Assembly (NCBI GenBank): GCA_965644315.1
Contig: CBFFRQ010000135.1
Span: forward strand, 1 to 23,565
Direction of reading: 5' to 3'
Length of the DNA stretch: 23,565 nt
From: Caecitellus pseudoparvulus
Taxonomy: Eukaryota; Protista; Bigyra: Bicosoecida
The notes beneath the pieces were generated by a model, which ran no database searches, was not told the origin of the DNA, and saw only the letters and a list, made by a program, of their open reading frames with translations. Positions 1-18,500 of this stretch are shown here, piece after piece. The number at the start of each line of letters is the position of its first letter. Position 1 is the stretch's first letter. The position numbers and the translations under genes are program-made.

Positions 1-1261
1 AACCCTAACCCTAACCCTAACCCTAACCCTAACCCTAACCCTAACCCTAACCCTAACCCTAACCCTAACCCTAACCCTAACCCTAACCCTAACCCTAACC
101 CTAACCCTAACCCTAACCCTAACCCTAACCCTAACCCTAACCCTAACCCTAACCCTAACCCTAACCCTAACCCTAACCCTAACCCTAACCCTAACCCTAA
201 CCCTAACCCTAACCCTAACCCTAACCCTAACCCTAACCCTAACCCTAACCCTAACCCTAACCCTAACCCTAACCCTAACCCTAACCCTAACCCTAACCCT
301 AACCCTAACCCTAACCCTAACCCTAACCCTAACCCTAACCCTAACCCTAACCCTAACCCTAACCCTAACCCTAACCCTAACCCTAACCCTAACCCTAACC
401 CTAACCCTAACCCTAACCCTAACCCTAACCCTAACCCTAACCCTAACCCTAACCCTAACCCTAACCCTAACCCTAACCCTAACCCTAACCCTAACCCTAA
501 CCCTAACCCTAACCCTAACCCTAACCCTAACCCTAACCCTAACCCTAACCCTAACCCTAACCCTAACCCTAACCCTAACCCTAACCCTAACCCTAACCCT
601 AACCCTAACCCTAACCCTAACCCTAACCCTAACCCTAACCCTAACCCTAACCCTAACCCTAACCCTAACCCTAACCCTAACCCTAACCCTAACCCTAACC
701 CTAACCCTAACCCTAACCCTAACCCTAACCCTAACCCTAACCCTAACCCTAACCCTAACCCTAACCCTAACCCTAACCCTAACCCTAACCCTAACCCTAA
801 CCCTAACCCTAACCCTAACCCTAACCCTAACCCTAACCCTAACCCTAACCCTAACCCTAACCCTAACCCTAACCCTAACCCTAACCCTAACCCTAACCCT
901 AACCCTAACCCTAACCCTAACCCTAACCCTAACCCTAACCCTAACCCTAACCCTAACCCTAACCCTAACCCTAACCCTAACCCTAACCCTAACCCTAACC
1001 CTAACCCTAACCCTAACCCTAACCCTAACCCTAACCCTAACCCTAACCCTAACCCTAACCCTAACCCTAACCCTAACCCTAACCCTAACCCTAACCCTAA
1101 CCCTAACCCTAACCCTAACCCTAACCCTAACCCTAACCCTAACCCTAACCCTAACCCTAACCCTAACCCTAACCCTAACCCTAACCCTAACCCTAACCCT
1201 AACCCTAACCCTAACCCCTAACCCTAACCCTAACCCTAACCCTAACCCTAACCCCTAACCC
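1..1261. repeat. Terminal telomere, (CCCTAA)n on + strand / (TTAGGG)n on - strand, about 210 units
   Basis: Hexamer array from base 1. Two CCCCTAA variants at ~1215-1221 and ~1252-1258, near the proximal edge. C-rich strand on + fits a left chromosome end. Confidence 0.98.
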
Positions 1262-1272
1262 AAAACTTTCCA

Positions 1273-1460
1273 AATGTCAAGCTAATCACAAGTTGTGAAG
1301 TGCTAACATTGCCTAATCCAGGCGCTCGTGCACCCAAGTGTGGTGTTGCACAGTGCTTGCTGGTTGGGTGGTGCGCACCGGGGCGGGGTAGTGCGAATTC
1401 CGCACACCATCGCACCGTGGCTCCCAGTTTGCGCCCTCGGTCGGGGCATGCACCTGGGAT
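1273..1460 (+). promoter_or_regulatory. Conserved 5' leader of element A (candidate internal promoter or structured RNA)
   Basis: 55 bp identical to element B (1301-1355 = 4244-4298). Shared hairpin GTGCG-AATTC-CGCAC (1391-1405) and shared TGCACCTG(T)GGAT-like motif (1449-1460). Confidence 0.6.
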
Positions 1461-1489
1461 CGACATCAAAAGCATCATTGACAAGCATC

Positions 1490-3574
1490 ATGAACGCCCA
1501 AGTGGATCAAGTCCTGGGGGTCCTCTTCGTGGAGGGGTGCCTGAAGCGCAAGCAAGTGCTCGGCCCCAGAACAGGTGTCTTCACTGACATGCCACGTCGG
1601 GGTGCCGCACGCACCTTCGAGCTTGGAGGACCCCTGCCCAAGACTGATCATGATAGTTCATCTTCGGCACGGGACATGTGGCTCGAGGTCTATGGGGAAG
1701 CCGCCGAACGGCTGATCCCAGGGCTGAGTGCGGAATTCGGCAACGCCAATGCGGCCCTGCGCCAGGGACCCACCGGATCGCCAACCATCCTCGTCACGCT
1801 CGGAAGTGAGGGTGATTCACCAACAGTGGCACGTCAACTTCGCATTCTTGCTGCTCAAGAGGACGACTTCGCCATTCGAGTCGGCCAAGGTGGGTTCGTC
1901 GCCGTGGCCTACACCAACACCAAGCAGTTCGCATCGGCGAAGGCGAAAGTGAAGGTGAAGGCCCACCCCACCGCCATCCAAGTGGCCCACCAAGTGACCA
2001 AGGAAGCAACCGAAATCGCCTGCCAGTCAGGTGATGTTGCCAAGGTCATGTGCCTCGTTAGGTCCCACTTCGACCATGGCCCCGTGCCAGCCCAAGCCGT
2101 CCGTCCCAGTGTCAGACAATCCGTCCCCTCCGAGGGTGATGCACCTGTCGACACCAAGACACCATCGACCTGGACTGACACTCAGCTCGACAAGGCACCG
2201 AAGAAGAAGAAGACCCGTCGAGGCAAGCGAGGAAAGGGCAAGTCAGCCGGACGATCCCTCACCTTCGAGGACGTCTTCATCAAGAACGTCCGGCCACCTG
2301 CACCTCGACCAACCTCACCACCTGCCACCCAAGGCTCACCCAAAGATACCGTCACCACCCCTGTGGTGCATGCCATGTTGCCTTCATCAAGGGTGCAGCG
2401 GGGCGTCGACCGCAAGTGGCCGTCCCCCACCCCGTCGGGCGAGGCAAGCCCCGAGGTGCACCGGTATCGGCCGTCTGCAGCAGCAGCATGGGAGGTGATC
2501 ACAAGGGTGGTGCCTCTTCATGACAGTGTGCGGACACCCGAGCACCTGGCCGAGTACCCCATCAAGCCTGGCCCTCTGGCCGACCTGCTGTCATCGACCC
2601 ACGTGTACTCTAACGTGGGGGGGCGGGCCTGTGTCCAGGCCTGTCTCGAGACGGCAGCAGGGGAGAGGGTCTTCGAGGCTGGGGACCTCCTCCTACTCCA
2701 GCATGCAGCCACCATCAACGCTGCCCAGCTTGCCTTCAAGCACATGGTCAGGCAGCTGGAGGGGGTGGTCAGTGACTCGTCCAGCTCGGACATCATGGAC
2801 GTCGGCCAGAAGCCACCCTCCCCCTTCCGCTCAGACGGGCAACGGGTGGCCGTCTTCCGCAACATGCTGCACCAGCACTCGCCGGATGACACCTTCCTGG
2901 CCCCAGGTACACCACCAGTCCTGCTTCCCGGCCTGCACCTGCTCATCGACCGCATCAACCAAGGGTACCGTGCCCCAGCCGGGCATGATGACCTTGGCCA
3001 GGCCGGCGTCGACCCCAGCCAGGTTGATGAAGAGGGTGACCAAGAGGGGCACCTCGACGGAGTGCTGTATGCCTTCGCACTTCGAGAGGTGTGGACCGAC
3101 AACACGGCCCATCTGCAGCTCATCCTCGTCGACCATGATCGAGGCAAGCTGGTGCTGTGGAACCCCGACATCCCTGACCTCCATGACGAGCTGCCCCTGC
3201 ACAAGTGCATGACCCGGCTGGCAGCCGAAGGCATCAACGTCTTGTACCGGATCTGGACCACACCCGAGGCGGGCAGTCCAGCACCCTTCCGGGACAGGCT
3301 TCGAGGGGCACTCCAGTCTCTCCGAGATGACTTCCCCCCCCTGCCTCACAAGGCCACCGACGGCACCGTGCACCCCCAGACCCTCATCGCTGGCAAGGGC
3401 ACAAGGGTGGCCATGCCTCATGGGCGGATGACCCGACAGCAGGCCGCCACCCTGGAGGCTGAGGTCAAGGACCCCCTCAAGCGGCTGGTGCCTGAAGACG
3501 GCGAGGGTCGCCTGCCCAAGGTCAAGGATGTGCCCCACATCTCGATCGGGCAGATGGGTGGACGCCTGATGTAA
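1490..3574 (+). CDS. Element A protein (694 aa): unknown N-terminal domain, basic/Pro-rich linker, Josephin-like cysteine protease domain
   Basis: ATG at 1490 (MNAQVDQVLGVLFV) aligns with ATG 4429 of element B (MEAKTSQVLGALFV). Shared blocks include GPRTGxFTDMPRRGAARTFELGG, CVQACLETAAG, PPVLLPGLH, DHDRGxLVLWNPD and ELPxHKCM. The ORF-track start at 1328 is a GTG inside the leader. Confidence 0.88.
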   Translation: MNAQVDQVLGVLFVEGCLKRKQVLGPRTGVFTDMPRRGAARTFELGGPLPKTDHDSSSSARDMWLEVYGEAAERLIPGLSAEFGNANAALRQGPTGSPTILVTLGSEGDSPTVARQLRILAAQEDDFAIRVGQGGFVAVAYTNTKQFASAKAKVKVKAHPTAIQVAHQVTKEATEIACQSGDVAKVMCLVRSHFDHGPVPAQAVRPSVRQSVPSEGDAPVDTKTPSTWTDTQLDKAPKKKKTRRGKRGKGKSAGRSLTFEDVFIKNVRPPAPRPTSPPATQGSPKDTVTTPVVHAMLPSSRVQRGVDRKWPSPTPSGEASPEVHRYRPSAAAAWEVITRVVPLHDSVRTPEHLAEYPIKPGPLADLLSSTHVYSNVGGRACVQACLETAAGERVFEAGDLLLLQHAATINAAQLAFKHMVRQLEGVVSDSSSSDIMDVGQKPPSPFRSDGQRVAVFRNMLHQHSPDDTFLAPGTPPVLLPGLHLLIDRINQGYRAPAGHDDLGQAGVDPSQVDEEGDQEGHLDGVLYAFALREVWTDNTAHLQLILVDHDRGKLVLWNPDIPDLHDELPLHKCMTRLAAEGINVLYRIWTTPEAGSPAPFRDRLRGALQSLRDDFPPLPHKATDGTVHPQTLIAGKGTRVAMPHGRMTRQQAATLEAEVKDPLKRLVPEDGEGRLPKVKDVPHISIGQMGGRLM

Positions 3575-4014
3575 GTCACCTGTGGGGGCATACTCCCTGT
3601 GCCACACATGACTGAAGCTTTGTGTCGCGACCGACGCACATAGCTGACATCGGACATTGGAAAGTCCAACCCAACCTCACCATCACCAACCCAACATCGA
3701 TACCAACACATCAGGACTCGGCTCAGTGGAAGGGGAAGGCACTTGCAGCAAGATCTGTGAGGCCGCCCCCAAACCTGAGCCGAAGGGACAGCCGGGCTGG
3801 GTCGTGTGCTTGCATCTCAGCAACACCCAGTCCGTGTCGAGTCCATATCCTCCAGCCCACACCGCCACCCAAGCCAAGCAAGTCGGGTCTCCACCCCTGG
3901 ACATCGGACCGAGACGGACGAGACTGGACTGGACGGACAAGACAAGAGTGGACCGAGACCTGGACCTACACCTCAAGACCATCCCACCGGGGCGGGCGCT
4001 GAAGCGCCAAGACA

Positions 4015-4189
4015 GACGGCGACTTATACAACGGACACGAGTCTGTGCTAGTCGCAAAGCCGTGCAAGCGGTGCCGTCGTGGTGTCTGTGTCACTGCATT
4101 CTGTTGTGGCGCAGGTGGCACCACATGTCCAAGCCCAAGCTGTACCATGATGTAGCCTGCATGGAGGCAATCTGCAATGCATTGAGTAG
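4015..4189 (+). other. Conserved structured 3' terminus of element A
   Basis: Stems GACGGC/GCCGTC, ACGGAC-acga-GTCTGT, GCCGT-GCAA-GCGGT and GTGGTGTC/GGCACCAC. Motifs ATACAACGGAC, GCCCAAGCTGTA and TGCAATGCATT are shared with element B. Confidence 0.7.
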
Positions 4190-4217
4190 CTAACCCTAAC
4201 CCTAACCCTAACCCTAA
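4190..4217. repeat. Short interstitial telomeric tract C(TAACCC)4TAA separating elements A and B
   Basis: Read directly from the sequence; same orientation as the terminal telomere. Confidence 0.97.
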
Positions 4218-4403
4218 TGTCAACCTAATCATAGGTTGTGCATTGCTAACATTGCCTAATCCAGGCGCTCGTGCACCCAAGTGTGGTGTTGCACAGTGTT
4301 TGGGTTGGCAGTGCAGCGCGCGGGTGGCAGCTGTGCGAATTCCGCACGCCATCACACCAGCGCAAGCAGTGTGCACTCCCCGCGGGAGTCTGCACCTGTG
4401 GAT
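4216..4403 (+). promoter_or_regulatory. Conserved 5' leader of element B
   Basis: Homologous to 1273-1460. Hairpins CAACCTA-atca-TAGGTTG (4221-4238) and GTGCG-AATTC-CGCAC (4333-4347). Confidence 0.6.
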
Positions 4404-4428
4404 ACCTGCATCACGTTCCATCATCACC

Positions 4429-7400
4429 ATGGAAGCCAAGACAAGTCAAGTACTGGGTGCGCTCTTCGTGGATAAGTGCATTGCTGCGCGAGCAATGCGT
4501 GGACCAAGAACGGGCGGATTTACTGACATGCCGCGCCGAGGCGCTGCACGAACGTTTGAGCTTGGCGGAGTGCCCATCGACGAAGACCCTTCAACATCTT
4601 CATCAACAATCCGAGATTCCTGGCTTCAAGTCTTTGGTGAGGCGGCGGAGGCCCAGTTCCCTGGCATCTGTGCGGAAGTTGGGCGTGGTGCAGCGGCGTT
4701 GCGCCGCCCACAAGGAACCCCAGCTGCCCTGCTAGTCTCGCTTGGCGGAGGAAGTGCCAGCGCAGAGCTGGCACGGAGCATACGCGAAGCAGCAGCACGT
4801 GAGGACGACTTCACTGTGCGCCTTGGACGAGGTGGCTTCATGGCTGTGGTGTTTCCAGACACACGCCAGTTCGCCAACGCCAAGGCCAAGGTGCAGGTGA
4901 CTGCCTCGGCCCCAGTGCTCAAGGCGGCCCACCTCCTGATGCCCCAAGCCACGAAGATTGCTGTTGAGACAGGTGACGTAAGCTCAGTCGTGAAGCTCGT
5001 CAAGTCCCATCTTCATGGCCACTCGCCGCCTGCTCGTCAAGACCGCCACTTCGTCCGACATTCCGTCCCCGTCAAGGGCGACGCCGCTGTCGACAAAGTG
5101 AACCGGCCTGCTCCACCCAAGCCTGCCCACACTGCTCATCATGTGCCAGGCAAGCGCAAGAAGGTACGCCGAGGACAGCGCTCGAAGTCTTCGAAGCCAT
5201 CCAATGTCGTGCCAGGACGAACGTTCGCTGACCTCTTCAAGACTCCCCCGTCCGAGCCCTCAGCAAGCCGACGCCCCTTCCGTACAGTGATGCCTGCCCC
5301 CACCACTTCACCGCGACCCACGACGGAGGTTGTCCTTCCATCCTCTCGGGTGCGCACTGGGGCTAGCACGCGATGGGACCAACCGCCAACTGCTGAGCAA
5401 GACTCAAAGCAACAACACCATGCCCAGTCAGCAGCCCAACCCGCTCAGGCACCCAGCACTGAAACGGCCAGGACTTTGTTTGTTGGTGCAGACAAGCCAA
5501 GTGTCAAGTCTGAACCGCAGGCATGCGACACGTTGGACATGCCAGACTCATCACCACCCTCCCCAGGAATCGTTGAAGTCGTTCGGATGGAAGACTGCAG
5601 CAGGCTCCCAGCGGATCTCCCAAGACACAGAATCCCAACTGGGTCCCCGCTGGAACGCCTCCTTGCATCAAGCACAGTAGCTGGCAACCTTTCCGAGCGC
5701 CACTGTGTGCAAGCATGTCTGGAAACTGCAGCGGGTGCTCAGGTGCTGGAGCCCGAGGATCTTCTCCTCCTCCAACACGCAGCCACAGTGGAAGCAGCGC
5801 AACGCGCATTCAAAACCCTGCGCAAGCGAGAGGCTGCAGCCCTGTCTGACTCGTCCAGCTCGGATGTCCAGTGCCTGGCGCCGACTAGAGGCGTGGCCTC
5901 TTCGGATCCCGAGGACCAGCTAGCAGCATTGGCCCGACTGCTGTACCGGTTCACTCCGGATGACTCGCTGCTGCAGCCCACGTCTCCCCCAGTGCTTCTG
6001 CCAGGTCTCCACATGCTGCTGAACCGTATCAATGTTGGGCATGAAGACCTGCATGGCGGGAACAAGCACCATGGCGGTGTGAGTCCACAAGCGGTTGTGG
6101 ACGAGGACGAGCAAGAGCGGTACTTCCATGGCGTCCACTTCGCCTTTGCTCTCCACCGGCCCCAACAAGTCCACGCTGCCCACCTGACTCTCATACTGGC
6201 TGACCATGACCGTGGAGTCCTTGTCCTATGGAACCCAGACACACCTGATGCATGCACTGAGCTGCCCATGCACAAGTGTATGCAGAGACTCTACGATGAC
6301 GCAGTGGACATGGTGTACAGAGTGTCGGCAACCCCCCACACCGGGAACCCAGTCCCTCTTTGTGACAGGATCCGAGACATATTCCACAGTCTGCGCCAGT
6401 CCTTCCCTCCCCTTCCCTTTGTGGACCACGAGGGGGCTGTCCACCTCAAGACGTTCATCGCGGGGAAGTCTACCAGGGTCACCATTCAAGCAGGCCGGCT
6501 CACTCGAGCACAGGCCTCTGCAGCAAGTGAGGCAAAGGAGCGCGACCCTCTGTTCCAACTCATTCCATCAGACGAGGATGCCATGCCCCCGAGGTGGGAG
6601 CAGAGTCCGTACACACCAGTGGGAAAGTCCAGCAGCATCCCAGTGTCGCTCGTGTCATGGAATGTTGCTGGGTCGTGTGGCCGCAACCTGCACAAGGTTC
6701 TCATCTGCGCCCAGTCTGTGTGCCTCCGTTCATCCAGACTGGTCCTCTGCCTCACGGAACCTGGTGGCCACGGCACACTTGACTCGGAAGTCATGGGGCT
6801 CCAATGTTTCAGGCCCTCCCCCCCAGATCGTCCACCCGGTCGCAGTGAAGTTGCGCTTCTGGTCGACCGTCGTCTACGCGCCACGCAGATAGTCAACCTT
6901 GGACTCGATGGGCGCTGTGTGGTCGCCTGCTCCATCCCCATGAAGCCAAGGCCCCTTGCTGTTATCGCGGCCTACGTGCCCAACTGGCACACGGCCCAGC
7001 GGAAGAAGCCACTTGCAGACCCAGACACTAAGCTGCCCCACCGCCAAGAGGTCTGGGAGCAGCTGGCCAACGCTGTAAAAAGTCTGCGAACCACGCATAT
7101 GATCTCCCTCATGGGGGACCTCAACTGCCATCCTGGTGATGGCGGACTTCCTGCTTGGGACGCAACATGCTGGCAGAACCGGACCGATGTCGCTGACCCC
7201 ATCCCAGATGTCAAGGAGCTCGCAATCGTGTGCGAGCATGGTAACCTCGAGCCAGCCGGGCTCGCCGGGTGCTCCACCCATGCCACGAACGGCAGAGCCC
7301 TGGACCACATCCTTGTCTGCCCACTGCTCAAGGCCCAGGTCAAGGTGCCACACACAGTGACGACAACCTTCTCCAGTGCAGGCAAGCAGAATCCGGAGAA

Positions 7401-8199
7401 GTCGATCCTGAGTGACCACTACCTCCTGTCAGCAACAGTCCAAGTTGTGATCCCTCCACGGCCAAAGGGTGCCCGGCATGCCCACTCTTCCTTCTCTGTG
7501 CCGCCATGGTGGGCATCATCTACACGTGAAGGGCGCAGGGCACAGACCTTGCACAGGCGGCTGCTTGACTCATCCATCACTGGTGCCGCATCCCCCCCAC
7601 CCGGCCAAGCTGCAGACACCCTGCTGTCAGGCCTGGATGATTTGGTTGCCGACGCTGCCCGACAAGCCCATGCCAAGTGCAAAGTTGTGGCACCCCCGCT
7701 GCTTCAGGCCCTTGCCGACATTCGCACCCTCAGCTCTGTCAAGAAGCGGATGACAGTGAGGACAGGGCGGATCAAGAAGCAACTCCGCAAGCTTCATCGA
7801 CGCCGGCACCTTCTTCAGCATAGCCAGTCACCCCATGCCCCAGCTGACCTACGTTGTGCGGATGAACGAAAGCACATGCTCATGGAGGACCTTGCTGCCA
7901 CCCATGTTGAAAGGAAGAAGGCGATGCGCAAGTGTACTCGGCTGGTTGCCAAGAAACACAAGGCCGCCATGTTCCAAGTCCAGCAGCGCATCCGGGACCT
8001 TGCCCGGCTTGACCCCTTCACTGCTCACCTGCATGTGCGGAAGCTGTCCGGCAGAAGGAGGAAGGGCACTTCGTCGTCCATCCAGTCAGTCATGGACGAC
8101 AGCGGCACCCTCATCACAGACCCATCACAAGTGCGGGCTGTGGTCAGGGACCAGATGGCCCAGATCATCAGCCCCCTCCACGGCAAGTCGTGTCCCTGA
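4429..8199 (+). CDS. Element B 5' ORF (1256 aa): unknown N-terminal domain, Josephin-like protease, APE-type endonuclease, helical linker
   Basis: APE/EEP motifs in canonical order: SWNVAG, LCLTEP, VALLV, AAYVPN, GDLN, LDHILV, SDH. The C-terminus IQSVMDDSGTLITDPSQVRAVV resembles the LINE pre-RT linker motif. ATG is in context ACCATGG. Confidence 0.92.
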   Translation: MEAKTSQVLGALFVDKCIAARAMRGPRTGGFTDMPRRGAARTFELGGVPIDEDPSTSSSTIRDSWLQVFGEAAEAQFPGICAEVGRGAAALRRPQGTPAALLVSLGGGSASAELARSIREAAAREDDFTVRLGRGGFMAVVFPDTRQFANAKAKVQVTASAPVLKAAHLLMPQATKIAVETGDVSSVVKLVKSHLHGHSPPARQDRHFVRHSVPVKGDAAVDKVNRPAPPKPAHTAHHVPGKRKKVRRGQRSKSSKPSNVVPGRTFADLFKTPPSEPSASRRPFRTVMPAPTTSPRPTTEVVLPSSRVRTGASTRWDQPPTAEQDSKQQHHAQSAAQPAQAPSTETARTLFVGADKPSVKSEPQACDTLDMPDSSPPSPGIVEVVRMEDCSRLPADLPRHRIPTGSPLERLLASSTVAGNLSERHCVQACLETAAGAQVLEPEDLLLLQHAATVEAAQRAFKTLRKREAAALSDSSSSDVQCLAPTRGVASSDPEDQLAALARLLYRFTPDDSLLQPTSPPVLLPGLHMLLNRINVGHEDLHGGNKHHGGVSPQAVVDEDEQERYFHGVHFAFALHRPQQVHAAHLTLILADHDRGVLVLWNPDTPDACTELPMHKCMQRLYDDAVDMVYRVSATPHTGNPVPLCDRIRDIFHSLRQSFPPLPFVDHEGAVHLKTFIAGKSTRVTIQAGRLTRAQASAASEAKERDPLFQLIPSDEDAMPPRWEQSPYTPVGKSSSIPVSLVSWNVAGSCGRNLHKVLICAQSVCLRSSRLVLCLTEPGGHGTLDSEVMGLQCFRPSPPDRPPGRSEVALLVDRRLRATQIVNLGLDGRCVVACSIPMKPRPLAVIAAYVPNWHTAQRKKPLADPDTKLPHRQEVWEQLANAVKSLRTTHMISLMGDLNCHPGDGGLPAWDATCWQNRTDVADPIPDVKELAIVCEHGNLEPAGLAGCSTHATNGRALDHILVCPLLKAQVKVPHTVTTTFSSAGKQNPEKSILSDHYLLSATVQVVIPPRPKGARHAHSSFSVPPWWASSTREGRRAQTLHRRLLDSSITGAASPPPGQAADTLLSGLDDLVADAARQAHAKCKVVAPPLLQALADIRTLSSVKKRMTVRTGRIKKQLRKLHRRRHLLQHSQSPHAPADLRCADERKHMLMEDLAATHVERKKAMRKCTRLVAKKHKAAMFQVQQRIRDLARLDPFTAHLHVRKLSGRRRKGTSSSIQSVMDDSGTLITDPSQVRAVVRDQMAQIISPLHGKSCP
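6643..7440 (+). other. APE-like (EEP family) endonuclease domain
   Basis: N (6661, WN), E (LTE), Y (AYVP), D and N (GDLN, 7117), D (LDH), D and H (SDH, 7414-7419) are all present. Confidence 0.92.
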
Positions 8200-11135
8200 A
8201 GTTCGGACTGGGCCGGCTGCTCCCATCGGCCCCGACCCACATGTCGACTGAAGCCGCCTGGACCCCGAGCGTGGACCATATCCTGAAGAAGATCCAGTCC
8301 CTGAGCCTCCACCGCAACCCTGGCACAGGGCACTACCAGGCTGAGCATGTCAAGTATGCCAGCGAGGACTTCCGGAAGAGGTACGCTGCCGCTCTTCAAC
8401 AGGCCATCAGCACCGGTTCATGTCCAAGTCAGTACCACAGTGGGGTGGGGACACTCATCCCCAAGACCGCCAGCCAGGCCGGGAGGGTGCAGACATACAG
8501 GCTCATTGTCTGCCGTCCCCCCCAAGCCAAGCTCTTCTTCTCGGTCGTGGCCTCATGTGTCGAAGACTGGGTGCAGCACTGGATCTCACATGAGCAGGCA
8601 GGCTTCACCCATGCCCGCAACACCCACGAGCAGATCCTGGCCTTGCAGGAGGTGTCCACTGCCCACCTGCGCGCCAAGCCCACTGCCAGTGTCCTTGTCC
8701 TTTTCGTGGACTTCAAGAGTGCCTTTGACACTGTCAGCCACGAAGCGATACTCGAGATCCTCGAGTCAGCAAGCCTCCCACAGCCCCTGCTCAGCTGCGT
8801 GAAGGACTACATGCAGCGCGCCACAGTGGCCATTCACACTGGCCATGGTCTTTGCGACCCCCTCCCAGTCACCAACGGGGTCCCCCAGGGTGGCGCACTG
8901 TCGCCTCTGTTGTTCAAGGTGGCTATTGATGTGCTCTCTCAACGCCTGAGAGAGCTGCCAAGTCAGGGAGTGTCAGGGGCAGGAGTGCCGACACCCCGCG
9001 GCCACGTCACGCATACGCTCTATGCGGACGATCTTGCTTGCCTCGCCACCACCCCTGCTGCCCTCCATCGGATGTTCCTTGAAGTCAAGGCCCTGGGCAG
9101 CCGGGTGGGCTTGGCCATCAACCCGCGCAAGTCCGGGGTCATGGTCCTCACCGGGGCGCAACAGGTCAATGGGGTGTCAGCCACGGAGCGGCGGAAGCTC
9201 ATCTGGCGGTCCCGCTGGCTGAGGTCAGGGCAGTCCATGAAGGTCAAGGGGACACCCATCCAACGCACGAGCACCTACTCGTACTTGGGTGTCCCCCTGT
9301 CTGAAACTGTCAGCCGAACCCGACTGCTTGCCACGAGGCAGGCCACTCTGTCCTGCACTCGGGCTGGGTTCGGCTGCGGTGCCCTCCTCAGTAGTGCGTG
9401 GCTGAGTCCGATCCTGAAGCAGCGGATCGGCACTGCCTCCATCAACAGTGCCGCCGACTACATCTTGGCGTCCCAGGTCAGCAACTCGGTGCTACCTTTG
9501 CGGGACGTCGATCGTGGACTTGCCATCGCCTTCAGCAAGGCCCAGCTGGGGATGCAAAGCTCGCTAGCACGTATGCACAACTATGCAAAGCTTGCTGTGT
9601 GCGGCGTCTTGCCAACACACATCCGGGCGACGAAACTCCGCAGCATTATCTTCATGAAGCTGCTGAAGAATGTCCAAGTGCCCACCCCCATGGCCAAGGC
9701 GCTGTCCATCAGCCTGCGCCAAGCCCTGGACCTGCTGCCCTCCCCCCTGGACATGGCCAGCATCTTCCTGGCCAATGTCCGCCTCGACAGGCCAGGCGCT
9801 GGAGGCATCCCAGATCCATGGGCCTTACACGGTCTACTCGACCTCTGGCTCCTTGGATGCCTCCCTGACCGCGCACGCCTGGAGGCTGTGTGCCTGGAGC
9901 CGCCGCCTGACTCTGCCCCAGACACACACGGGGTCGACATCACCGCTGGGATGGACCCCGCCCCCCCCAAGATCCAGCTGCTTGGACTCGCGGCAGCGGA
10001 GTCCTCAGATCTGTCGGCTGCCCCCCAGTTCCCGGACACCACCCCCTGGGCCACTCGGCAACGCGTCGTCGCCTCCTTCCTTCATGTGGCCCAGACGGTC
10101 AAGTGCGGTGCAGTTGGCTACACTCCCACGGGGGAGATGAAGGCCACCAGGCGTCCGAAGGAGTACCACATCGGTGTGGGTGCTCGCTTCTTCGCCTGGC
10201 TGCACCCGATCCCTTCCTCTGTGAACCCAGTCTTCTGGGTCCACGAAGGCGATCAGGAGAGACGTGTGAAGGTGCACCTGTGGCAGACGCTTCAAGTGTT
10301 CAACGGGGATGACACCCCGACACTGTTCAGCGCCTGCCCCCTGTGCCACAGCGTCTCCTGGTGCAGCCTGCAGGAGCACGTCCTTCTTGACTGCCCCCAC
10401 CACGCCCTGGTCCCTGCGAGAAGGTCCGCCCTGTCAGAGGTGCGGAACCTCCTGTCCAGATCCAATGATGCAGTGAGGGGGTCGCCAACTGCCAGTACCT
10501 CGAAGTACCCCCCACTGCTGGATGCTGTTGTCCACGCCGACGAAGGCCGCTTGTTGGGCCGCCCGTGTCGCCTGCTGCTGCTGCGACTGCTGCTGTGCGG
10601 CCAGTGGCCCCATCGGTGGGGCCAGCCTCCGGCACAACAGCCCTGGAGTCCCGAGGCAGCCGCGGTCCTGAGTAACCCCCATGTCACTCTCCGCGGCTCC
10701 TCGGGTCCACTCCGCCCCCCCAAGTACTGGCGCGAGGCCCTGGTAGCTGCCACGGGCCTCGCGGTATCTGCGTGGGACGCGGTGGTGACGTGCATGCTCA
10801 GCCTTACCTCTCGTGCCGACCGTCACATCCAGAGGCACGCCCGGTACCTCTGGTGGGCGGCGCATGGACGAACGTGTCCTCTCCCAGGTTACTCGGCTCC
10901 TGATCCGAGTACTGTGAGGAAGCATGTGCGGGACGTGAAGACGCGGCGCTTCGAGCGCACTTACTTCCCTGTCAAGTCCCCTCGTCGGCCGCCTCGCTCC
11001 TTCACGAGGCAGGCCACCTTGCTCGACTTCGGGCTGGCACGGCCGGAAGTCCACGAGGAACCTCCGGCACCGTCGATTTCATCCTCGGCGTCGTCCTCTG
11101 GGTCGTCCTTGAAGTGTCCATCTGACTCTGAGTAG
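8190..11135 (+). CDS. Element B 3' ORF: non-LTR reverse transcriptase with C-terminal CCHC zinc finger (first ATG 8241; may be translated as a fusion with the upstream ORF)
   Basis: RT motifs LIPK, YRLI, EQAGF, FVDFKSAFDTVSH, GVPQGGALSPLLF, LYADD (TAT at 9021), GLAINPRKS and YSYLGV. CPLC...HVLLDCP at ~10335-10397. Confidence 0.95.
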   Translation: MSLKFGLGRLLPSAPTHMSTEAAWTPSVDHILKKIQSLSLHRNPGTGHYQAEHVKYASEDFRKRYAAALQQAISTGSCPSQYHSGVGTLIPKTASQAGRVQTYRLIVCRPPQAKLFFSVVASCVEDWVQHWISHEQAGFTHARNTHEQILALQEVSTAHLRAKPTASVLVLFVDFKSAFDTVSHEAILEILESASLPQPLLSCVKDYMQRATVAIHTGHGLCDPLPVTNGVPQGGALSPLLFKVAIDVLSQRLRELPSQGVSGAGVPTPRGHVTHTLYADDLACLATTPAALHRMFLEVKALGSRVGLAINPRKSGVMVLTGAQQVNGVSATERRKLIWRSRWLRSGQSMKVKGTPIQRTSTYSYLGVPLSETVSRTRLLATRQATLSCTRAGFGCGALLSSAWLSPILKQRIGTASINSAADYILASQVSNSVLPLRDVDRGLAIAFSKAQLGMQSSLARMHNYAKLAVCGVLPTHIRATKLRSIIFMKLLKNVQVPTPMAKALSISLRQALDLLPSPLDMASIFLANVRLDRPGAGGIPDPWALHGLLDLWLLGCLPDRARLEAVCLEPPPDSAPDTHGVDITAGMDPAPPKIQLLGLAAAESSDLSAAPQFPDTTPWATRQRVVASFLHVAQTVKCGAVGYTPTGEMKATRRPKEYHIGVGARFFAWLHPIPSSVNPVFWVHEGDQERRVKVHLWQTLQVFNGDDTPTLFSACPLCHSVSWCSLQEHVLLDCPHHALVPARRSALSEVRNLLSRSNDAVRGSPTASTSKYPPLLDAVVHADEGRLLGRPCRLLLLRLLLCGQWPHRWGQPPAQQPWSPEAAAVLSNPHVTLRGSSGPLRPPKYWREALVAATGLAVSAWDAVVTCMLSLTSRADRHIQRHARYLWWAAHGRTCPLPGYSAPDPSTVRKHVRDVKTRRFERTYFPVKSPRRPPRSFTRQATLLDFGLARPEVHEEPPAPSISSSASSSGSSLKCPSDSE

Positions 11136-11491
11136 CGGGCGATGTGTGTAGAGCGCGGCGCGAGGCGGTGCAAGCTTACGGCGTGGCGTGGTGACAACCA
11201 CGGTCGTGGCTGAGCGAAGTGCGAGAGCAGGGTGATGTGATGTCCTTGATGAATGACGGAACCTGCGGAAAGTTGGAAGATGATGAAGTGAATATGTCCA
11301 GTATACTTACATGATGGCTCGGGGTCCACGTGCAGCCCGAGATAGATTCCTGTGACGGGGCGCGCGGAATTTGGCAGGGTGAACACGCGGGCGCGCGGGG
11401 CAACGTCGCAGGCGGGGCGCACAGGTCCTCAGGGCCTTGAGTGATGAGTCAGCTGGATTATCTGTGAAGAAAAGGAGGTGTTCTTGGTGTT

Positions 11492-12451
11492 CTTGGTGCG
11501 CGGGTGGCGTTGTTCCGGCGGTGCGCGCTGCTACCACCGGCGTGGTGCAGTGCAACACCGTCGTGAAACGCCACCCGAAGGCGGCCACTGCGGCTCAGGA
11601 CAGCGCGCAGTGGCCCCAGGCACACGTGCAGTGCCTGGCAAGGGCCAGGAGAAGCGGGGGGTTTCTGAATTATGAAGCGAAGTGTGGACTGGAACGAAGC
11701 AAGAGTGGGCCCGGCCCCCTCTGGCTCAGCCGACTGAGCCGAGAGGGCGCGGGCGGGGCAGTTCGACACGTATGGGCGGGCGCGGGCGCGCCCTAGCAAG
11801 CGGCGGCTCATACAACGGACGTATGTCCGTGATGGCTGCAGACCCACGAGAGTGGGAGCCGCTGTAGCGCTCCTGGTGTGCCTTGTGCACAGCAGCGAAC
11901 GCTACATGTGATGCCCAAGCTGTATCGCGTGCAAGCGTGAAGGCGACATGCAATGCATTGAATGAACTAACCTTGGTGCGCGGGTGGCGTTGTTCCGGCG
12001 GTGCGCGCTGCTACCACCGGCGTGGTGCAGTGCAACACCGTCGTGAAACGCCACCCGAAGGCGGCCACTGCGGCTCAGTTCAGCGCGCAGTGGCCCCAGG
12101 CACACGTGCAGTGCCTGGCAAGGGCCAGGAGAAGCGGGGGGTTTCTGAGTTATGAAGCGAAGTGTGGACTGGGACGAAGCAGGAGTGGACCCGGCCCCCT
12201 CTGGCTCAGCCGACTGAGCCGAGAGGGCGCGGGCGGGGCAGTTCGACACGTATGGGCGGGCGCGGGCGCGCCCTAGCAAGCGGCGGCTCATACAACGGAC
12301 GTATGTCCGTGATGGCTGCAGACCCACGAGAGTGGGAGCCGCTGTAGCGCTCCTGGTGTGCCTTGTGCACAGCAGCGAGCGCTACATGTGATGCCCAAGC
12401 TGTATCGCGTGCAAGCGTGAAGGCGACATGCAATGCATTAAATGAGCTAAC
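11492..12451 (+). repeat. Two tandem 480 bp copies of the element B 3' end
   Basis: 11492-11971 versus 11972-12451. I count 9 substitutions and no indels. Each copy ends in CTAAC. Confidence 0.95.
11972..12446 (+). mobile_element. Element C: 5'-truncated 3' fragment of a B-type element
   Basis: Near-identical to the last 475 bp of B. Preceded by CTAAC(C) and followed by a telomeric tract in the same register as A and B. Confidence 0.72.
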
Positions 12452-12574
12452 CCTAACCCTAACCCTAACCCTAACCCTAACCCTAACCCTAACCCTAACC
12501 CTAACCCTAACCCTAACCCTAACCCTAACCCTAACCCTAACCCTAACCCTAACCCTAACCCTAACCTAACCTAG
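12447..12574. repeat. Interstitial telomeric tract, about 20 CCCTAA units, degenerating to CCTAA, CCTAG at the gene junction
   Basis: Perfect repeats 12447-12564, then CCTAA (12565-12569) and CCTAG (12570-12574). Confidence 0.97.
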
Positions 12575-15500
12575 CCAAGTCTGCGCCAGAGACGGAGTTG
12601 ATGAGCGAGCCGAACACGGCAAAGAATAGCAGTGCGTTCATGAGAATGGACACTTGGTCGTAGCAGAGGGCCATGCGGAGGGTCCACGAGCACAACAGGC
12701 GGAAGCCTGTGCCCAGCAACCCACATACCGAGCGCTGCCATCGCCCACATCTCCCCAGACAAGTCAAAGCCTCCGCTGGTCGATCTGCTTGGAGAGCTCT
12801 AGACAATGACGGAAGGCTGTCCACGCCTTCCCTTGCCAGCAGGAATGGGACTTCTTGCTTGGTGTGCTTATATCGCCACCCACACGACCTGCACGTGGCC
12901 CAGTGGTGTCTGTGCGCCAGAACGACATCAACTTTAACTCTTCGGTCAACTGCACAGTATCTGATGATGCGTGTTGGACAAGAAGTGTCGCAATTTTCCA
13001 TCACCTTTTGTACCTCTCGCCTGAAATGTCTATGAGAAGCCTTGGCTTCCATTGCCCTGAAGGTGCTTCGCTGCTGCAGCAGCTTCCTGCTGCTCTTGGA
13101 GCTCTTGCTACCAACTCTGTCTCGTCCAATTTTCATGGACTTCACACGTTCCATGCGTCTTGAGCTGCTTGACGGAGCAACTGAAACAAGTTCTTGTGTG
13201 CTGAGGCCCAATGCACGTGAACTCCTTGGCCCAAAAAGGCCCATTGCCATGTTCGGAGGCTGTACGGCAGCGAGAGAGGGGCTTGCCATTGTTGCGCTGC
13301 TCCTAGATCTAGCACTCTCTGGTGACCCTGATACCATTTCATCCAGATCGCCTGATGCAGAAGGCTCGGGCACAAGTGTCTTGGAGTGCGTGCCTGCCTT
13401 CTCTGAGTTGAAGGCCGTCGATGCCTTTCCACCACCACCAGGAACACCTGCTTGCACAAGAGATGGTTCGCTGCAACTCGAGAGTGAACTGTCCGACTCC
13501 ACAGAGAACCTCGCACTTGCAAAGAAGCCACCTACATCAGACTCGATGCTGCTGCTTGACTCGCAGCTGCTCTCCGGTGCAAGATGCTTCAGTGAGCTCA
13601 TGACGCTCCTACTTGACAGTCCTGCCCTTGTCAATCTTGCTGCTTTGAATGTGCGGCGCGATTCAGATGTATATCGCTCGGTGCTGCCCTTCTGCCGCAG
13701 AGTTGAGCGCATGCGCGGCCCTTCAGCACCGCCGTGGAAAGCTAGGACTGGAGCCGTCGATCCCCAACCACGCATGGTGGATGCTTGACCTACGGCAGGC
13801 TGTCCCCAGGACTGTGTTTGAGTTGCGTTTGAGCATTTGGTGTGCACCATACAGGAAGCTCGACGGACACGCCTTCTTGCTCGTCGCCTGGACGGGGGCC
13901 CCAGCATCTCAGGCCCATGTGCTGACTTCGACTGGGTTAACTGCGGTTTTGCCCTCGCAAAAGCATGCAGAGGGTTAGATGTGGCTGGTTTTCCATCTGT
14001 GATGCGTTCTTCGGTTCTGACGATTGATGAAAGTGCCATAGCAGGGCCCTTTTCCTGAACTGAGGCGGCCTCGCCACCCCCCCGCACATCGCCCTCTTGC
14101 CCTGCATCCCCCAACGCAGGTTGAGACGAACGCAGTGAGCCCGCCGTGATTGGTGCGGCGCCTTGGCCATCAGTAGTGCTCAACGTCTCCGTCAGCGACT
14201 CAGACATCAAAGGATGACCTTCCATGCAGGATTGCTGCCCAGATTTCGATTGGAGATCCTGGGTGCAGTGCGCTGAGACGGAGTGCCTTGCACCATCACC
14301 GACACTCAAGCCTTGAGCACTTGTGCCACACTCCCCTCTGTGTCTGGCAAGGGGGTTGACTCGGAACAGGGGATTCACATCGGAGGGTGGTTGCGTAGAG
14401 TCTGCAACCTCGGCTGCTTTATCGCTCCCTCCAAGCCCCAAGGCTCTTCCAACAAAGGAAAACGCAAAGGCTGGCTGCTTAGATGACCCTCCCACTGCTT
14501 TGGTTTGAGAAGTTTCACCAAGCACCGCCGCCTCTTGCCCCGTGTTCTTGCGTCGGTGCAGCACGGAAGTGCTGCAAGCCTCAGCCTGGTGCGTCACAGG
14601 CAGGGAAGCAGCGCGTTTTGAATCAGAGCCTGGAGCATGCTGCTCACGAGACAACACAGCAGTTTTCGCTCCACTTTGCCTTGTGTGGCTCGCTTCACTT
14701 TGGGAACTGCGGTCCGCCATTGGGCCAGCCCGTCGCCCTCGGGATGCCAGACTGCTTGGGAAGGCTTTCGGCTTGGTAATGCTCATTCGCCGGAGAAACG
14801 AATTGGAGGATTCAACTCGATGTTGAGCACCAGGTGTGTGAAAGGGATTTGGAAGGTGTGCTTGAGGTGGCAGTTCACGGGGCAAGTCACTCGGCTGGGG
14901 TTGAACTTTGGGTTGGGTTCGGGCGCTGCGAGGTAGTACTGCCGAAGGTTGCTTCACCTCGCGTGAAATGGTCTTGTCTTGAGAGTCTTCAACGGCTGTC
15001 TCCTGCTTGTTGGGGACTTCTGCTGTTTGATGCCTCAACGTTCGCCATCGGATTGCGCTCCTACTTCGAGGGCGATGTGACACCCCCGTCTCTCCTTCTG
15101 ACGAGCTGCAATCGTCAAACACTCCTTGGGCCTCCCCAGCAAGCGGGTACTTGTGGTTATCACGAAGTTTTCGCACGTCCTCTTCTATTCGCTCTGCGAG
15201 TTTCCTCTTTGCCTCTGCCCCGAAGCGGCCGGACTTCACAGCTCGAACCCAGTTCAGTGACACTTTAACCTCGCTATGGGGCCGCATCAAGGCCAGCAGG
15301 AATGCATAGAAGGACACAGCAAGACAAAGTAGCAGCGCCGAAAAGGTTGGTTGGTCCCTGAACACAGTCGCCAGCGCTGCGACCGCCATGCGCTGTGCAA
15401 ATTCTAGAATAGCCCAGAAATACATGGAACGTGTGTATGGCTTGTACAGCTTGCCGATCAGGGCGTGAATGAACGCAGCACGCTGGTGATCCTTGATGAG

Positions 15501-18500
15501 GGACTGAATGGCTGCAAGTGAGTTTCCCTGGCTGTTGCCTTTCTTGTCAGTCTTGCCCAGCTGCTTGTCAGTCGGTTCTTCAATGGTGTGTGGCTTTCCG
15601 CTGCTGATCTTGTCAATGTTAAGTTTCACTGCTTTCCGGTTCCAGACTAGGGCGCCGAAAAACACGAACGGAACGCCCATTCCAAACAAAAAGAGTGATG
15701 AGTATGCAAGCGCTGTGAGCCGCTCGTACTCCTCCCCAAAGCAGTCTACGCTCACGTCTGCACTCAGCACACGCTTGCCGCCAAGTGGAATGCAAGAAAA
15801 CACTTCAAAAGCAGATGAAACAATTCCGACGTACATATATGAGACTATGGTAACAGAGTAGTCCACAAACCTTTGAAAGGTTTTGGTGCCCGTGGTCGTT
15901 GAGCCACACATTCGCGAACAGTGCAGCCAATGCAGCCACGTTCCCAAAGCAGCAAGCCCAATCAAAAAAAGCGGGGTCAGCTGGTACATCTTCCAGGAAT
16001 CAGAGAAGGTCGCTCGGTAGCCTGACTGCAAGAGGGCACAATGCAAGTTGACGCTGGAAATGTCCAGCTGGAGCGTGCTGCCTAACCACCCAGCAGCAAG
16101 TGCAGCGGACCCCCACGGCATGCTCAGCTTGACTGCTTGACTTAGCAGCTGAAGGGAATACACTGCCATGCCAACCCCAAAGAGGGAGGGGGCGCGAAGA
16201 AAGAAAAAAAAAGCAACAATGACTGCAGGAATAATCACAAGGAACAAAGCAGCAATGACCAAGGGGTGCCATACTGAAGCGTCACAACGCGAACAAGCTC
16301 TCGTTGCCAGTGACTGCCGCCTGCTATTCTCGTCACAAAGCTGACAGGCAACACCAGTGTAGCCTTCAGCGCACGTGTTGTTGCCGAGACATGCTTCTGC
16401 TGGCACACAAGGCGTCAGCAGGAATCGGGAGGCAGAGGTAAAGTTTGCACTGGAGGCGTTGAACCTCGGGCTCGCCAGGCGCCGGGAAAAGGCAGACGAC
16501 AGCTCACCCACGATTGAGCTGGCCGAATCTTCAGCGCCAGCGAGGAAGGATTCCAGTGGGGTGCTGTCCAAGTGAGCCCAGTTGTCTGAAAGGGCGGTGG
16601 TGAGGTCATGCTGCCAGAACCCTGGCCGCGACACGGGCGGCGACGTGCCTCCGCCACACTCTGTCGGAGCTTCCGCCCCTGCTGGGCAGTCATCTGTGGC
16701 GCACCTTGGGCAGGGCAGGCAAACGTCAGTGTCTTCGAGCATGGCAAAGTAGCCAGTGTCACAGATGGCGCGAATGCCGGACTGCTGCGCTGTCAAGGTT
16801 GTCGTTTGGCCTGCGACAGCGACCTGGACGCCCTTGCGGCCGATTACCATGCCGTCGAGCTGGCACTGCAGCTCAGAGTCGCTGCTCCAGACGGTGCGGG
16901 CACCGACCCTGGGCTGGCAGAGTACTCCTCCGATGGAAACTGTTTCGTCTTTAGGGGAAGGCTCAAACAGGCCAAAGTTCCAGCCGTGCAGCACCACAAC
17001 TCCACCACGGGCGTCCACAAAGAGGTCCTCCACTCGCTGTGACGACCCCAGCACAACTTGATTCAGCTGGGTGCCGAGTACTTCAATTCCTGGGCTGTTC
17101 GAACGCACGAACTGCACCGTCGGGCCTTCCAACGTTGTGAAGTTGCTGTCTTGATCGTTGTGTTGCTGCTGCCCCAAGGCGTGTAGCCGAGATGGCTGGC
17201 CGCCAGAGGCGACGAACTGCAGCAGAGCGATCACAGGCGGGTCATACGAAAAAACGACACTGTTGGACTTGTCCCCGAGAATCGATACGTGCAGGGTCAG
17301 GTTGGCGCCGGATCCAGGTGGCGTGCGCACCAGCAGCTCGTCGTGTGTGTGGCGCACAATGTCCTCCAAGGCGATGAGCGCGTTTCCCAGGTACACCTGG
17401 GGAGAAACTAGTGAGGGGATTCCGAATGACGATCCAACAACGCGTACAAGGTCTCCCCCCACTGTCCGAGAGTGTGTAGGCCATGCCACTTCATAAGGCC
17501 GGCGTGCCCCAGCGTACTCGAGCTGGAAAATGGAGGGCGCTGCATACTCGTACGTTCTGCTCGCAATGACGCTGGAGAATTGGCCGAAACCCTCGGCTTG
17601 ATCCATTGTGAGGCGATCGTGCACGTAGACTGTAACAGCAACGTCTTTCAGGCCATGTGGAGGCAGGCACTCGATCAGCGTGTCGTTCCATGACAAAATT
17701 GCACACTGCTGCCCCCCTACAAGAACGGCATTCTCGTAGGATTCGCTTGGGCTGATACACAAGGTGGCATTCAGAGGGCAAGCTCGGACTGCTGCCACAC
17801 CACGGAACTCGCGGCTGGTGGACCACGCGGACTTGCCACGCAGCAGTCCCGGGCCCAAGTTGTCTCCGTGGATCCGCACCCTGTGACTCGCATTCGTGAC
17901 GACACTGCGATCGTAGTCCCAAGCACCTGAGCTTGTCGACTGGAAGCCCTCCACGTCGGTAATTGTGGGCTGCATGTATGTAAGGAGGGAAGCAGGGTAC
18001 ACAAGATCAGGAGCGCCTGGCAGGTACGGCCGGAGCTCAAAGCGGCCCTGGCCTGGAAGTGTCGCAAACGTAATGCTCGTGTCGGTCCAGTTCACTATCT
18101 GCCCATCTGGCATGTCGTTCCAGATGAGACCTCCTGATGCATCCCTCTCGCCTGTGCGCACTTGCAGTCGGCCTTGGACGATGCCAAACAAGCGCCCCTG
18201 CAAAGTGACAAGGCTGCCGCCCTGGGTCGAAATGCTATCCTTGCCGAGCACTTGCGAGACTTCAGGAACACGAAGGAGCTCTTGGTAGTGGAATGGTGCA
18301 CTTGCCAGTTGGTTCGCCACAGACACCCACAGCGTGCTCGGGATGGAGATGGACTCCTCAGTGTACCCACGCAAGGTGCACTCGATGCGGGTGTCTCCAA
18401 ACGACACAGCGGGATCCACACAAGGACTTACGGGCCCGCTCCCTGCGTCGGCCTGCAGCCAGACAATTGTCGCATTTTCGCCAGACACTTCGCAGCGGCA

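Follow-up and report, generated by a model that had tools for sequence, protein, structure and literature searches.

Polarised arrays of telomeric retrotransposons and a coding partner without reverse transcriptase at chromosome ends of the bicosoecid Caecitellus pseudoparvulus

Chromosome ends of the marine protist Caecitellus pseudoparvulus (Bigyra: Bicosoecida) carry a two-component retrotransposon system: a long interspersed nuclear element (LINE), here called B, that encodes an apurinic/apyrimidinic-type endonuclease (APE) and a reverse transcriptase (RT), and an old partner, A, that lacks both domains and has retained an open reading frame (ORF). As far as the assembly shows, the elements are telomere-specific. 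We describe them from contig CBFFRQ010000135.1 of assembly GCA_965644315.1 (G000:C135 in our numbering), the whole of which, 23,565 bp, is referred to as the window; the genome is GC-rich and comprises 30.6 Mb in 215 contigs. The three units found there, A, B and a truncated copy C, are very probably members of a lineage-restricted, telomere-specific group of retrotransposons that lack long terminal repeats (non-LTR) and spread by target-primed reverse transcription (TPRT), with a partner resembling HeT-A of Drosophila.

Three head-to-tail units nested in telomere repeats

The window opens with a CCCTAA array whose orientation marks a left chromosome end. Three units follow, all on the plus strand and all with their 5' ends facing the tip of the contig and chromosome:

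1-1261, no strand: terminal telomere array (CCCTAA)~210 (209.8 copies, period 6, 99% matches); the C-rich strand reads inward from the tip
1262-4189, plus: unit A, full-length partner without RT, 2,928 nt; 5' end AAAACTTTCCAAATGTCAAG, 3' end GCAATGCATTGAGTAG
4190-4217, no strand: interstitial telomere repeats, CTAACC x4.7, the spacer between A and B
4218-11966, plus: unit B, APE-RT LINE, without the first ~12 nt (AACTTTCCAA) of the family 5' end
11967-11972, no strand: single CTAACC linking the 3' end of B to the truncated 5' end of unit C
11973-12446, plus: unit C, 5'-truncated B-type copy, last 474 nt only, 98% identical to the tail of B
12447-12571, no strand: innermost telomere tract (CTAACC)21, adjoining unique DNA

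The 3' ends of A, B and C are built alike, each consisting of GCAATGCATT and a further 6-7 nt followed directly by CTAACC, and none of the three carries an A-run there. No LTRs and no terminal or other inverted repeats (TIRs) were found in the elements, and an Rfam search of window positions 1-12700 matched no family. The original prediction had described three head-to-tail units of one polarity, with telomeric 3' ends and without poly(A), nested in canonical TTAGGG telomeres; all of its coordinates hold, and repeat tracts lie distal to, between and proximal to the units.

Distribution of the elements across chromosome ends

An exact-pattern count over the whole assembly yielded 71 A-type 3' ends on 48 contigs, and a genome search with A recovered more than 45 full-length copies at ~100% identity together with a 5'-truncated series. 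All full-length plus-strand copies lie at most 15.1 kb from the contig start, one further plus-strand 3'-end match lies at 29.4 kb on contig C30, and five full-length minus-strand copies lie 1-8.5 kb from the far contig end. Among the A copies that could be checked for contig position, a set that excludes seven other minus-strand pattern matches, the 5' end points outward and the copy sits ~15 kb or less from a contig end, the match at 29 kb being the exception. The DNA distal to A was examined at four minus-strand ends: three hold only telomere repeats, 1.1-7 kb of them, up to the tip, and the fourth (C42) has a diverged LINE between A and the terminal telomere tract.

B-type copies, four of them full-length and about fifteen 5'-truncated, obey the same rule of position and polarity, and A is both the most abundant and the most distal element. 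In this assembly the copies are nested in telomere repeats at the ends and are not mostly internal, and the HeT-A-like polarity read from the window, with 5' ends toward the tip, is general. Truncation affects one side only: shortened A copies begin at element positions 247, 1029, 1186, 2427, 2722, 2760, 2827 and 2904 and keep the 3' end, and shortened B copies begin at 2344 to 7480 and all end at the family 3' terminus.

A check of the genome for telomerase reverse transcriptase (TERT) returned a Telomerase_RBD (RNA-binding domain) match, scoring 79 bits, within an open frame of 1,389 aa, and every end examined is still capped by 1.1-7 kb of telomerase repeats. The terminal tract varies in length, from ~7 kb on contig C145 (locus L034) to 1.1-1.6 kb on loci L031 and L033 and in the window (1-1261).

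Coding capacity of the LINE B

Unit B contains the following features:

4426-6627, plus: N-terminal orphan region, 734 aa, common to A
6655-7419, plus: APE-type endonuclease domain (PF03372)
8172-8176, plus: C5 homopolymer separating the APE and RT frames in the window copy; C6 in the copy on C34, which reads through
8457-9296, plus: reverse transcriptase domain (PF00078, E 8.6e-32)
10335-10394, plus: C-terminal CCHC motif CPLC-x10-H-x4-C (C-x2-C-x10-H-x4-C), residue 716 of the second frame
11136-11966, plus: 3' untranslated region, its last ~210 nt forming the conserved structure

The element has the properties of a LINE: an RT domain of family PF00078, an APE domain N-terminal to it, no LTR or TIR, and a 5'-truncation series with a common 3' end. 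The APE domain matches PF03372 at 28.6 bits (cut-off 24.5) over profile positions 2-225 of 225. It is very divergent, its own profile giving only marginal EEP matches in PDB; its motifs WN, TE, YVPN, GDLN, LDH and SDH show no variation among those family rows in which they are covered. For the RT domain the best PDB matches are human L1 ORF2p and R2 proteins, about equal at E ~1e-17. Pfam shows RVT_1 alone in the RT frame, with APE upstream, and no restriction-like endonuclease. B had been predicted to combine a protease with APE, RT and a CCHC motif: the last three were found, and no test confirmed the protease. The predicted absence of Gag-type zinc knuckles and of poly(A) was borne out by a motif scan of A and of the N-terminal part of B, and by inspection of the 3' ends.

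The window copy of B is split by a frameshift. It differs from the otherwise identical copy on C34 only in homopolymer lengths, C5 against C6 at 8172-8176 and C6 against C8 at a second site after 10507 (window 10508-10513). The C6 at the first site gives the C34 copy one long frame, and the C8 at the second breaks its C-terminal tail; there the window copy agrees with an intact, 94%-identical copy on C105, in which one ORF spans 2,236 aa counted from the ATG. In copies of a related family, B2, frames of 1,575-1,591 aa stay open to the edge of the locus. The window copy of B and those on C34 (L002) and C148 (L003), all three full-length and ~100% identical, differ almost only in C-homopolymer lengths, and their frames shift at different places. 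Such differences are typical of long-read consensus errors and probably have that origin, real mutations being also possible, and ORF integrity in this assembly is therefore not to be taken at face value. Given the intact C105 copy and the resemblance of the homopolymer differences to consensus errors, the native form of the family is, to judge by these copies, one ORF comprising the N-terminal region, APE, RT and CCHC motif.

The same three copies (window 4218, L002, L003; 100% identical) begin at ATGTCAACC, without the AACTTTCCAA leader of the other full-length copies, and their downstream neighbours differ. The shared leader-less 5' end suggests a master copy or a start site without the leader, or else exchange between ends.

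The ratio of nonsynonymous to synonymous divergence (dN/dS) between B and its 94%-identical variant is 0.19 in the N-terminal region, 0.08 in APE and 0.14 in RT plus tail; between B and B2 the N-terminal region gives 0.16. All three parts of the protein are under purifying selection.

The partner A is a diverged lineage with its own ORF

Two features were mapped within unit A:

1481-3574, plus: single ORF, 697 aa from ATG plus stop, homologous to the N-terminal ~735 aa of B; no Pfam family
3976-4195, plus: structured 3' RNA domain and the first CTAACC; consensus fold, 58 pairs

The ORF of A aligns with the first ~795 residues of B (stop-to-stop numbering) at 42% identity (E 1e-173) and ends just before APE, in agreement with the proposal that A encodes only the region upstream of that domain; APE, RT and zinc knuckle are all absent from the ORF. 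At the base composition of A, a run of 748 codons free of stops would arise by chance with a probability of ~1.5e-9. At the DNA level, A and B resemble each other in two stretches only, the first ~350 nt (75% identical, with 92% identity over the first 90 nt) and the last ~200 nt. Between A and B dN is 0.47 and dS is saturated, and A is as distant from B as it is from B2. Because of this depth of divergence and the equal distance to both families, A is taken to be an old lineage with a retained ORF rather than a recent deletion product. Present-day A copies are almost identical to one another, which points to a recent burst, to homogenisation between ends, or to both.

The N-terminal region shared by A and B

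Searches with the N-terminal region gave almost nothing. A Pfam scan of A and of the B N-terminus found no family at E<=0.01 and, at E<=10, only chance-level, unrelated families with no Josephin among them; a PDB profile search gave chance matches only; the ESM Atlas contained no usable neighbour; and a profile of six family members found, among 1.84 billion representatives, one 48-aa fragment as the only relative. AlphaFold2 models of the N-terminal halves, built from alignments of 5-6 rows, reached a mean pLDDT (predicted local distance difference test) of 35.9 and 39.1, too low for a fold search. For now the region is best described as an orphan under purifying selection, and its protein probably has an ORF1/Gag-like RNA-binding or end-targeting function.

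The original prediction had placed a Josephin-like protease here, that is, a papain-fold cysteine protease, which would process the polyprotein or remove ubiquitin-like modifiers. A set of candidate residues is indeed invariant across A, B, the 94% variant (B94) and B2 (C46-x-Q48-x-C50-L, H206, D213-H214-D215, W222-N223-x-D225 and H236-x-C238 in the numbering of alignment A4), and the low-confidence model shows helices and then a four-strand sheet, in that order. Yet the alignment has only three effective lineages, which makes the invariant Cys and His residues weak evidence, and the model has a pLDDT of 36. With the Josephin profile PF02099, searched in six frames through the entire genome with a threshold of E<=10, two cellular genes were recovered (107 and 48 bits) and not one of the 70-plus element copies, and the Pfam, PDB, Atlas and representative searches are blank as described above. 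We therefore regard a Josephin-like protease in this region as unlikely, though the invariant Cys and His residues would be compatible with an enzymatic domain of some kind.

A fixed 3' junction and a common 3' RNA structure

Junctions were tallied by pattern counts genome-wide and in 34 fetched loci. Those loci contain ~50 3'-end motifs of five 3'-end types, and all but one read GCAATGCATT, N6-7, CTAACC in the same register and with at least one unit; the one that deviates, an inner motif on L012, retains just CTA ahead of unrelated DNA. Genome-wide, 70 of the 71 A-type ends run directly into CTAAC(C): 62 are followed by CTAACC, 8 are fused as GAGTAG-CTAAC-TTTCC to the beginning of the next A, and the remaining 1 is of another kind. 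In more than 10 cases no more than one or two units part the tail from unrelated sequence, be it unique DNA or the eroded 5' end of the element that follows. At their 5' ends full-length copies read (A)AACTTTCCAAATGTCAA and meet the distal repeats in a number of slightly differing arrangements. Viewed on the G-rich strand, element cDNA begins directly after ...GGTTAG-3', and full-length cDNA ends ...GGAAAGTT-3', a terminus that can base-pair with a telomerase template or with CUAAC in the RNA of the next element.

Stubs of 10-25 nt of the A 3' end were also seen between telomere repeats, on L034 (C145 end, ~7040-7100 counted tip-first), at C187:2785-2809 and at C190:3105-3129. Either abortive reverse transcription, or erosion and subsequent healing by telomerase, could have produced them.

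The last ~210 nt of A, B, B94, two B2 variants and two D-type elements (short fragments described below) share one consensus structure of 58 pairs, with 96.5% of cells paired. Compensatory change is present in 17 of the 58 pairs; shuffled alignments (n=500) gave 7.4 +/- 1.7 such pairs, with 0/500 reaching 17, and slid-partner controls gave 0-3. A and the LINEs are ~40% diverged over this stretch. Because the helices are kept in A despite that divergence, A is probably copied in trans by the same RT, for which the shared 3' structure is the best evidence.

Proposed mode of transposition

In the favoured explanation, the autonomous form would be a single ORF of ~2,236 aa with the orphan N-terminus, APE, RT and CCHC motif, and A would be an old non-autonomous derivative that has retained the 5' leader and the structured 3' RNA along with the N-terminal protein. 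RNA of A would presumably be copied by the RT of B-like elements that recognise the 3' structure. Element RNA is expected to begin with AACTTTCC and to terminate in ...GAGUAG-CUAACC(n), poly(A) being absent. New copies would then arise by TPRT on the G-rich strand from a 3' end ...GGTTAG, which could be provided by a nick that APE makes or by the chromosome terminus, natural or eroded. The last nucleotides of the RNA would pair with, or encode, one telomere unit (CUAACC), which would produce the fixed 3' junction without poly(A), and telomerase would lengthen the new end afterwards. As to the primer, the invariant APE motifs and the dN/dS of 0.08 argue that the endonuclease is used, and the many one-unit junctions that adjoin eroded ends argue that end-priming also happens.

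A more far-reaching version, which we offer tentatively, is that a stramenopile independently evolved Drosophila-like two-component end-building beside telomerase. The orphan protein, made in bulk from A, would steer the ribonucleoproteins to chromosome ends; the telomere unit at the end of the RNA would enable the RT to prime directly on the natural TTAG-3' overhang or on eroded ends; and broken chromosomes such as that in the window could be healed and lengthened both by retrotransposition and by telomerase.

Evidence weighing against transposition, and alternative explanations

Several points weigh against the favoured explanation. The APE match is weak at 28.6 bits, and the B APE profile matched none of the LINE endonuclease sequences in PDB at E<=10. 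The window copy of B is frameshifted and the C34 copy is changed near its C-terminus, so that among the four full-length B-type copies only the C105 variant is fully intact. Transcription, the RNA 3' end and an RNA without poly(A) are predictions from the DNA, and endonuclease nicking and end-priming would look alike in the resulting sequence. Recombination or gene conversion between ends, and not recent transposition, could account for part of the ~100% identity among the ~70 A copies, and all eight identical A-A junctions could go back to a single event that was then copied.

The last two points lead to a different account of the arrays, as subtelomeric repeats of old, immobile elements that spread mainly by recombination between ends, whether by break-induced replication, by gene conversion or by a process like alternative lengthening of telomeres (ALT). 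Beside the near-identity of the ~70 A copies and the A-A junctions, which agree letter for letter, it would explain the three B copies with the same unusual 5' end, short of ~12 nt. It fits poorly with neighbours and repeat counts that vary at nearly every junction, with graded 5' truncations over constant 3' ends, down to the 10-25-nt stubs inside telomere repeats, and with intact ORFs at dN/dS 0.08-0.19. The window itself also speaks against it: its distal A and B are 100% identical to other copies, and its innermost unit C is ~2% off the tail of B. As a full explanation recombination is improbable; it probably adds to retrotransposition and does not replace it.

Equally improbable, in our assessment, is that the system is wholly or partly domesticated, the N-terminal protein, made in bulk from A, serving as a telomere-binding or capping factor and the additions backing up telomerase in a mutualism as in Drosophila. 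Such a role would suit an element that has kept only its N-terminal ORF, at dN 0.47 from B and with no stop in 697 codons, that is the most abundant and most distal of the set, and that in the window belongs to an array that sits on a broken gene and so grew on a healed end. An ORF1-like protein is, however, equally expected in a selfish non-autonomous element that needs cis-preference, and nothing in the sequence indicates what the protein would bind. Moreover, with 1.1-7 kb of telomerase repeats outside the elements at all examined ends and a telomerase RBD match in the genome, no need for a backup is visible.

A probably truncated gene and the proposed history of this chromosome end

On its inner side the array abuts a large gene:

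12561-23558, minus: giant intron-less cadherin/TIG-domain ORF, 3,665 aa, with its stop codon inside the telomere repeat

Unique DNA starts at 12572, within this ORF. The stop codon (12561-12563) lies in the telomere repeat, and the last three residues are encoded by repeat letters. Homologues of the gene come from stramenopiles (Pythium, Cafeteria). Alignments with the paralogues on C79, C149 and C100 extend as far as the junction, and two of the paralogue frames, judged by length, appear to continue for ~75-95 residues beyond it. The unique gene flank of the window was found only here in the genome. Most likely a chromosome break severed the gene, and the broken end was healed when telomere repeats were added. 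In the proposed sequence of events, telomerase would have healed the terminal deletion, C, then B, then A would have been added, and repeats would have been laid down between them and on top.

Logan contigs from the source runs extend to 12585 and from there 38-86 letters into the repeat zone, which was masked. The same holds for contigs from a run with a different organism label (~1% divergent), and no alternative continuation is listed. Because of these continuations the junction at the giant gene is not an assembly accident, and it may be shared between strains. An assembly artefact as the source of the whole arrangement was rejected, given the same architecture on 48 contigs, a gene flank that occurs only here, the Logan contigs reaching the junction and an independent JGI contig.

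Further lineages at chromosome ends

Other RT lineages occur at the ends, with amino acid identities to B of 82% (B2), 67% (B3), 48% (a frameshifted one) and 30-34% (two distant ones). The last three correspond to LINE RTs at L032:2207-3734 (48%, frameshifted), L016:5962-7068 (34%) and L025:2326-3381 (30%), which lie in the same orientation at other ends; on L016 and L025 the distant LINE lies on the proximal side of the local B-type or B2 copies. LINEs of diverse kinds live in the telomeric niche. Between B and B2 the termini (B 1-675 and the last ~450 nt) are ~88-93% identical and the coding core 72-76%, which points to strong constraint on the termini or to their exchange between families.

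Short D-type fragments (L008:5026-5245, L010:4351-4570 and L007 ~5640-5742) have the tails GAACAG, GAACTGT or GACTGT. They share the 3' RNA structure and the CTAACC junction and match none of the coding families seen, and are either another non-autonomous family or the remnants of an extinct one.

The JGI contig Ga0494878_008003 (L050, 2,769 bp) carries a B2-family sequence at 97-98% nucleotide identity, from the end of the N-terminal region through APE to the start of RT. Because of this 98% identity it must derive from the same or a very close organism, and it is independent evidence of the element outside this assembly.

Comparison with known telomeric retroelements

The nearest proteins to the RT of B are 24-30% identical and either unnamed or from a green alga. 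In the Atlas the RT falls among generic RVT_1 clusters, a Tx1-named cluster at rank 14 being a lead only, and a JGI metagenome scan gave only 25-38% RT relatives with no telomere repeats near them. L1 and R2 are about equally matched in PDB, and the RT would for the present be assigned to no named clade. A 2023 survey of telomeric retroelements covers insects, Giardia, Chlorella, Pyricularia, an anole and rotifers, and no stramenopile (PMC10088271). Our literature search on telomeres, retrotransposons and stramenopiles or thraustochytrids found no description of such elements, though a genome paper might still mention them.

A parallel in way of working is offered by HeT-A, TART and TAHRE, the Jockey-clade elements of Drosophila, which also stand head to tail in terminal arrays, their 3' ends pointing to the centromere and 5'-truncated copies lying inside, and in which a coding partner without RT likewise outnumbers the RT elements and shares their termini (in part after PMC5537684). 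Unlike them, the elements described here end in one telomere unit instead of poly(A) and have no Gag knuckles, and the protein of the partner is the N-terminal part of a single polyprotein ORF, not a separate Gag. The hosts differ as well: Drosophila lacks telomerase, whereas C. pseudoparvulus has the telomerase RBD match and long TTAGGG tracts. The polarised arrays and the partner without RT show a common way of working, not family membership.

TRAS and SART of Bombyx and Tribolium (R1 clade) resemble B as APE-type LINEs with a C-terminal CCHC motif that occupy a fixed position in the repeat of a telomerase-positive host. They require a structured 3' untranslated region for recognition, and the telomere-like 3' nucleotides of their RNA set the start of reverse transcription (work cited in PMC10088271). 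In contrast to B, with one ORF (2,236 aa in the intact copy) and neither knuckles nor poly(A), they have two ORFs, Gag-like knuckles and poly(A). We know of no coding non-autonomous partner of TRAS or SART.

MoTeR1 and MoTeR2 of Magnaporthe, the FoTeRs of Fusarium and Cnl1 of Cryptococcus also insert in TTAGGG-type telomeres of telomerase-positive hosts. MoTeR1 and MoTeR2 form an autonomous and non-autonomous pair with shared ends (PMC10088271; PMC12857005). All of these fungal elements carry a restriction-like endonuclease (REL) C-terminal to RT and cluster with CRE/SLACS (PMC12857005), whereas B has an APE-type domain N-terminal to RT; because of this difference in endonuclease, B is not of their type. 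The ORF of MoTeR2, moreover, is unrelated to that of MoTeR1, whereas the ORF of A is a homologue of the B N-terminus.

For Zepp of Chlorella, GilM and GilT of Giardia, Tx1-1_ACar of the anole and Athena of rotifers, no coding partner without RT has, to our knowledge, been described. Athena is thought to prime on the G-overhang. It differs from B in having a Penelope-like RT, a type that comes with a GIY-YIG endonuclease or with none, and no endonuclease of its own, whereas B has a LINE-type RT, with L1 ORF2p and R2 as best PDB matches, and a conserved APE. All of these elements occur at or in telomeric repeats of telomerase-positive hosts (PMC10088271), and Athena elements also have telomere-repeat sequence at their ends (PMC8557442). 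As far as the comparison can be tested, the suggestion that the present elements match the hallmarks of neither HeT-A nor TRAS/SART nor MoTeR is upheld by the APE in place of a REL, the lack of knuckles and poly(A), and the telomerase RBD match.

Telomere-specialised retrotransposons, known from flies, silkworm, beetles, Giardia, Chlorella, a lizard, rotifers and a few fungi, are the main argument for an evolutionary and mechanistic link between telomerase and retroelements. With ~70 near-identical copies, intact autonomous relatives and a small genome of 30.6 Mb, C. pseudoparvulus would be a tractable system for asking how retroelements find chromosome ends, and if they live there as parasites or commensals or come to the aid of telomerase. 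The orphan N-terminal protein, which is under selection, is a candidate for a new end-targeting factor. To the known cases the system described here would add a stramenopile one that joins features so far met separately: an APE LINE with a fixed junction, as in TRAS and SART; a partner without RT and polarised arrays, as in HeT-A; and a telomere unit in place of poly(A) at the 3' end, as in Athena and MoTeR, in a genome with a telomerase RBD match and kilobase-long TTAGGG caps.

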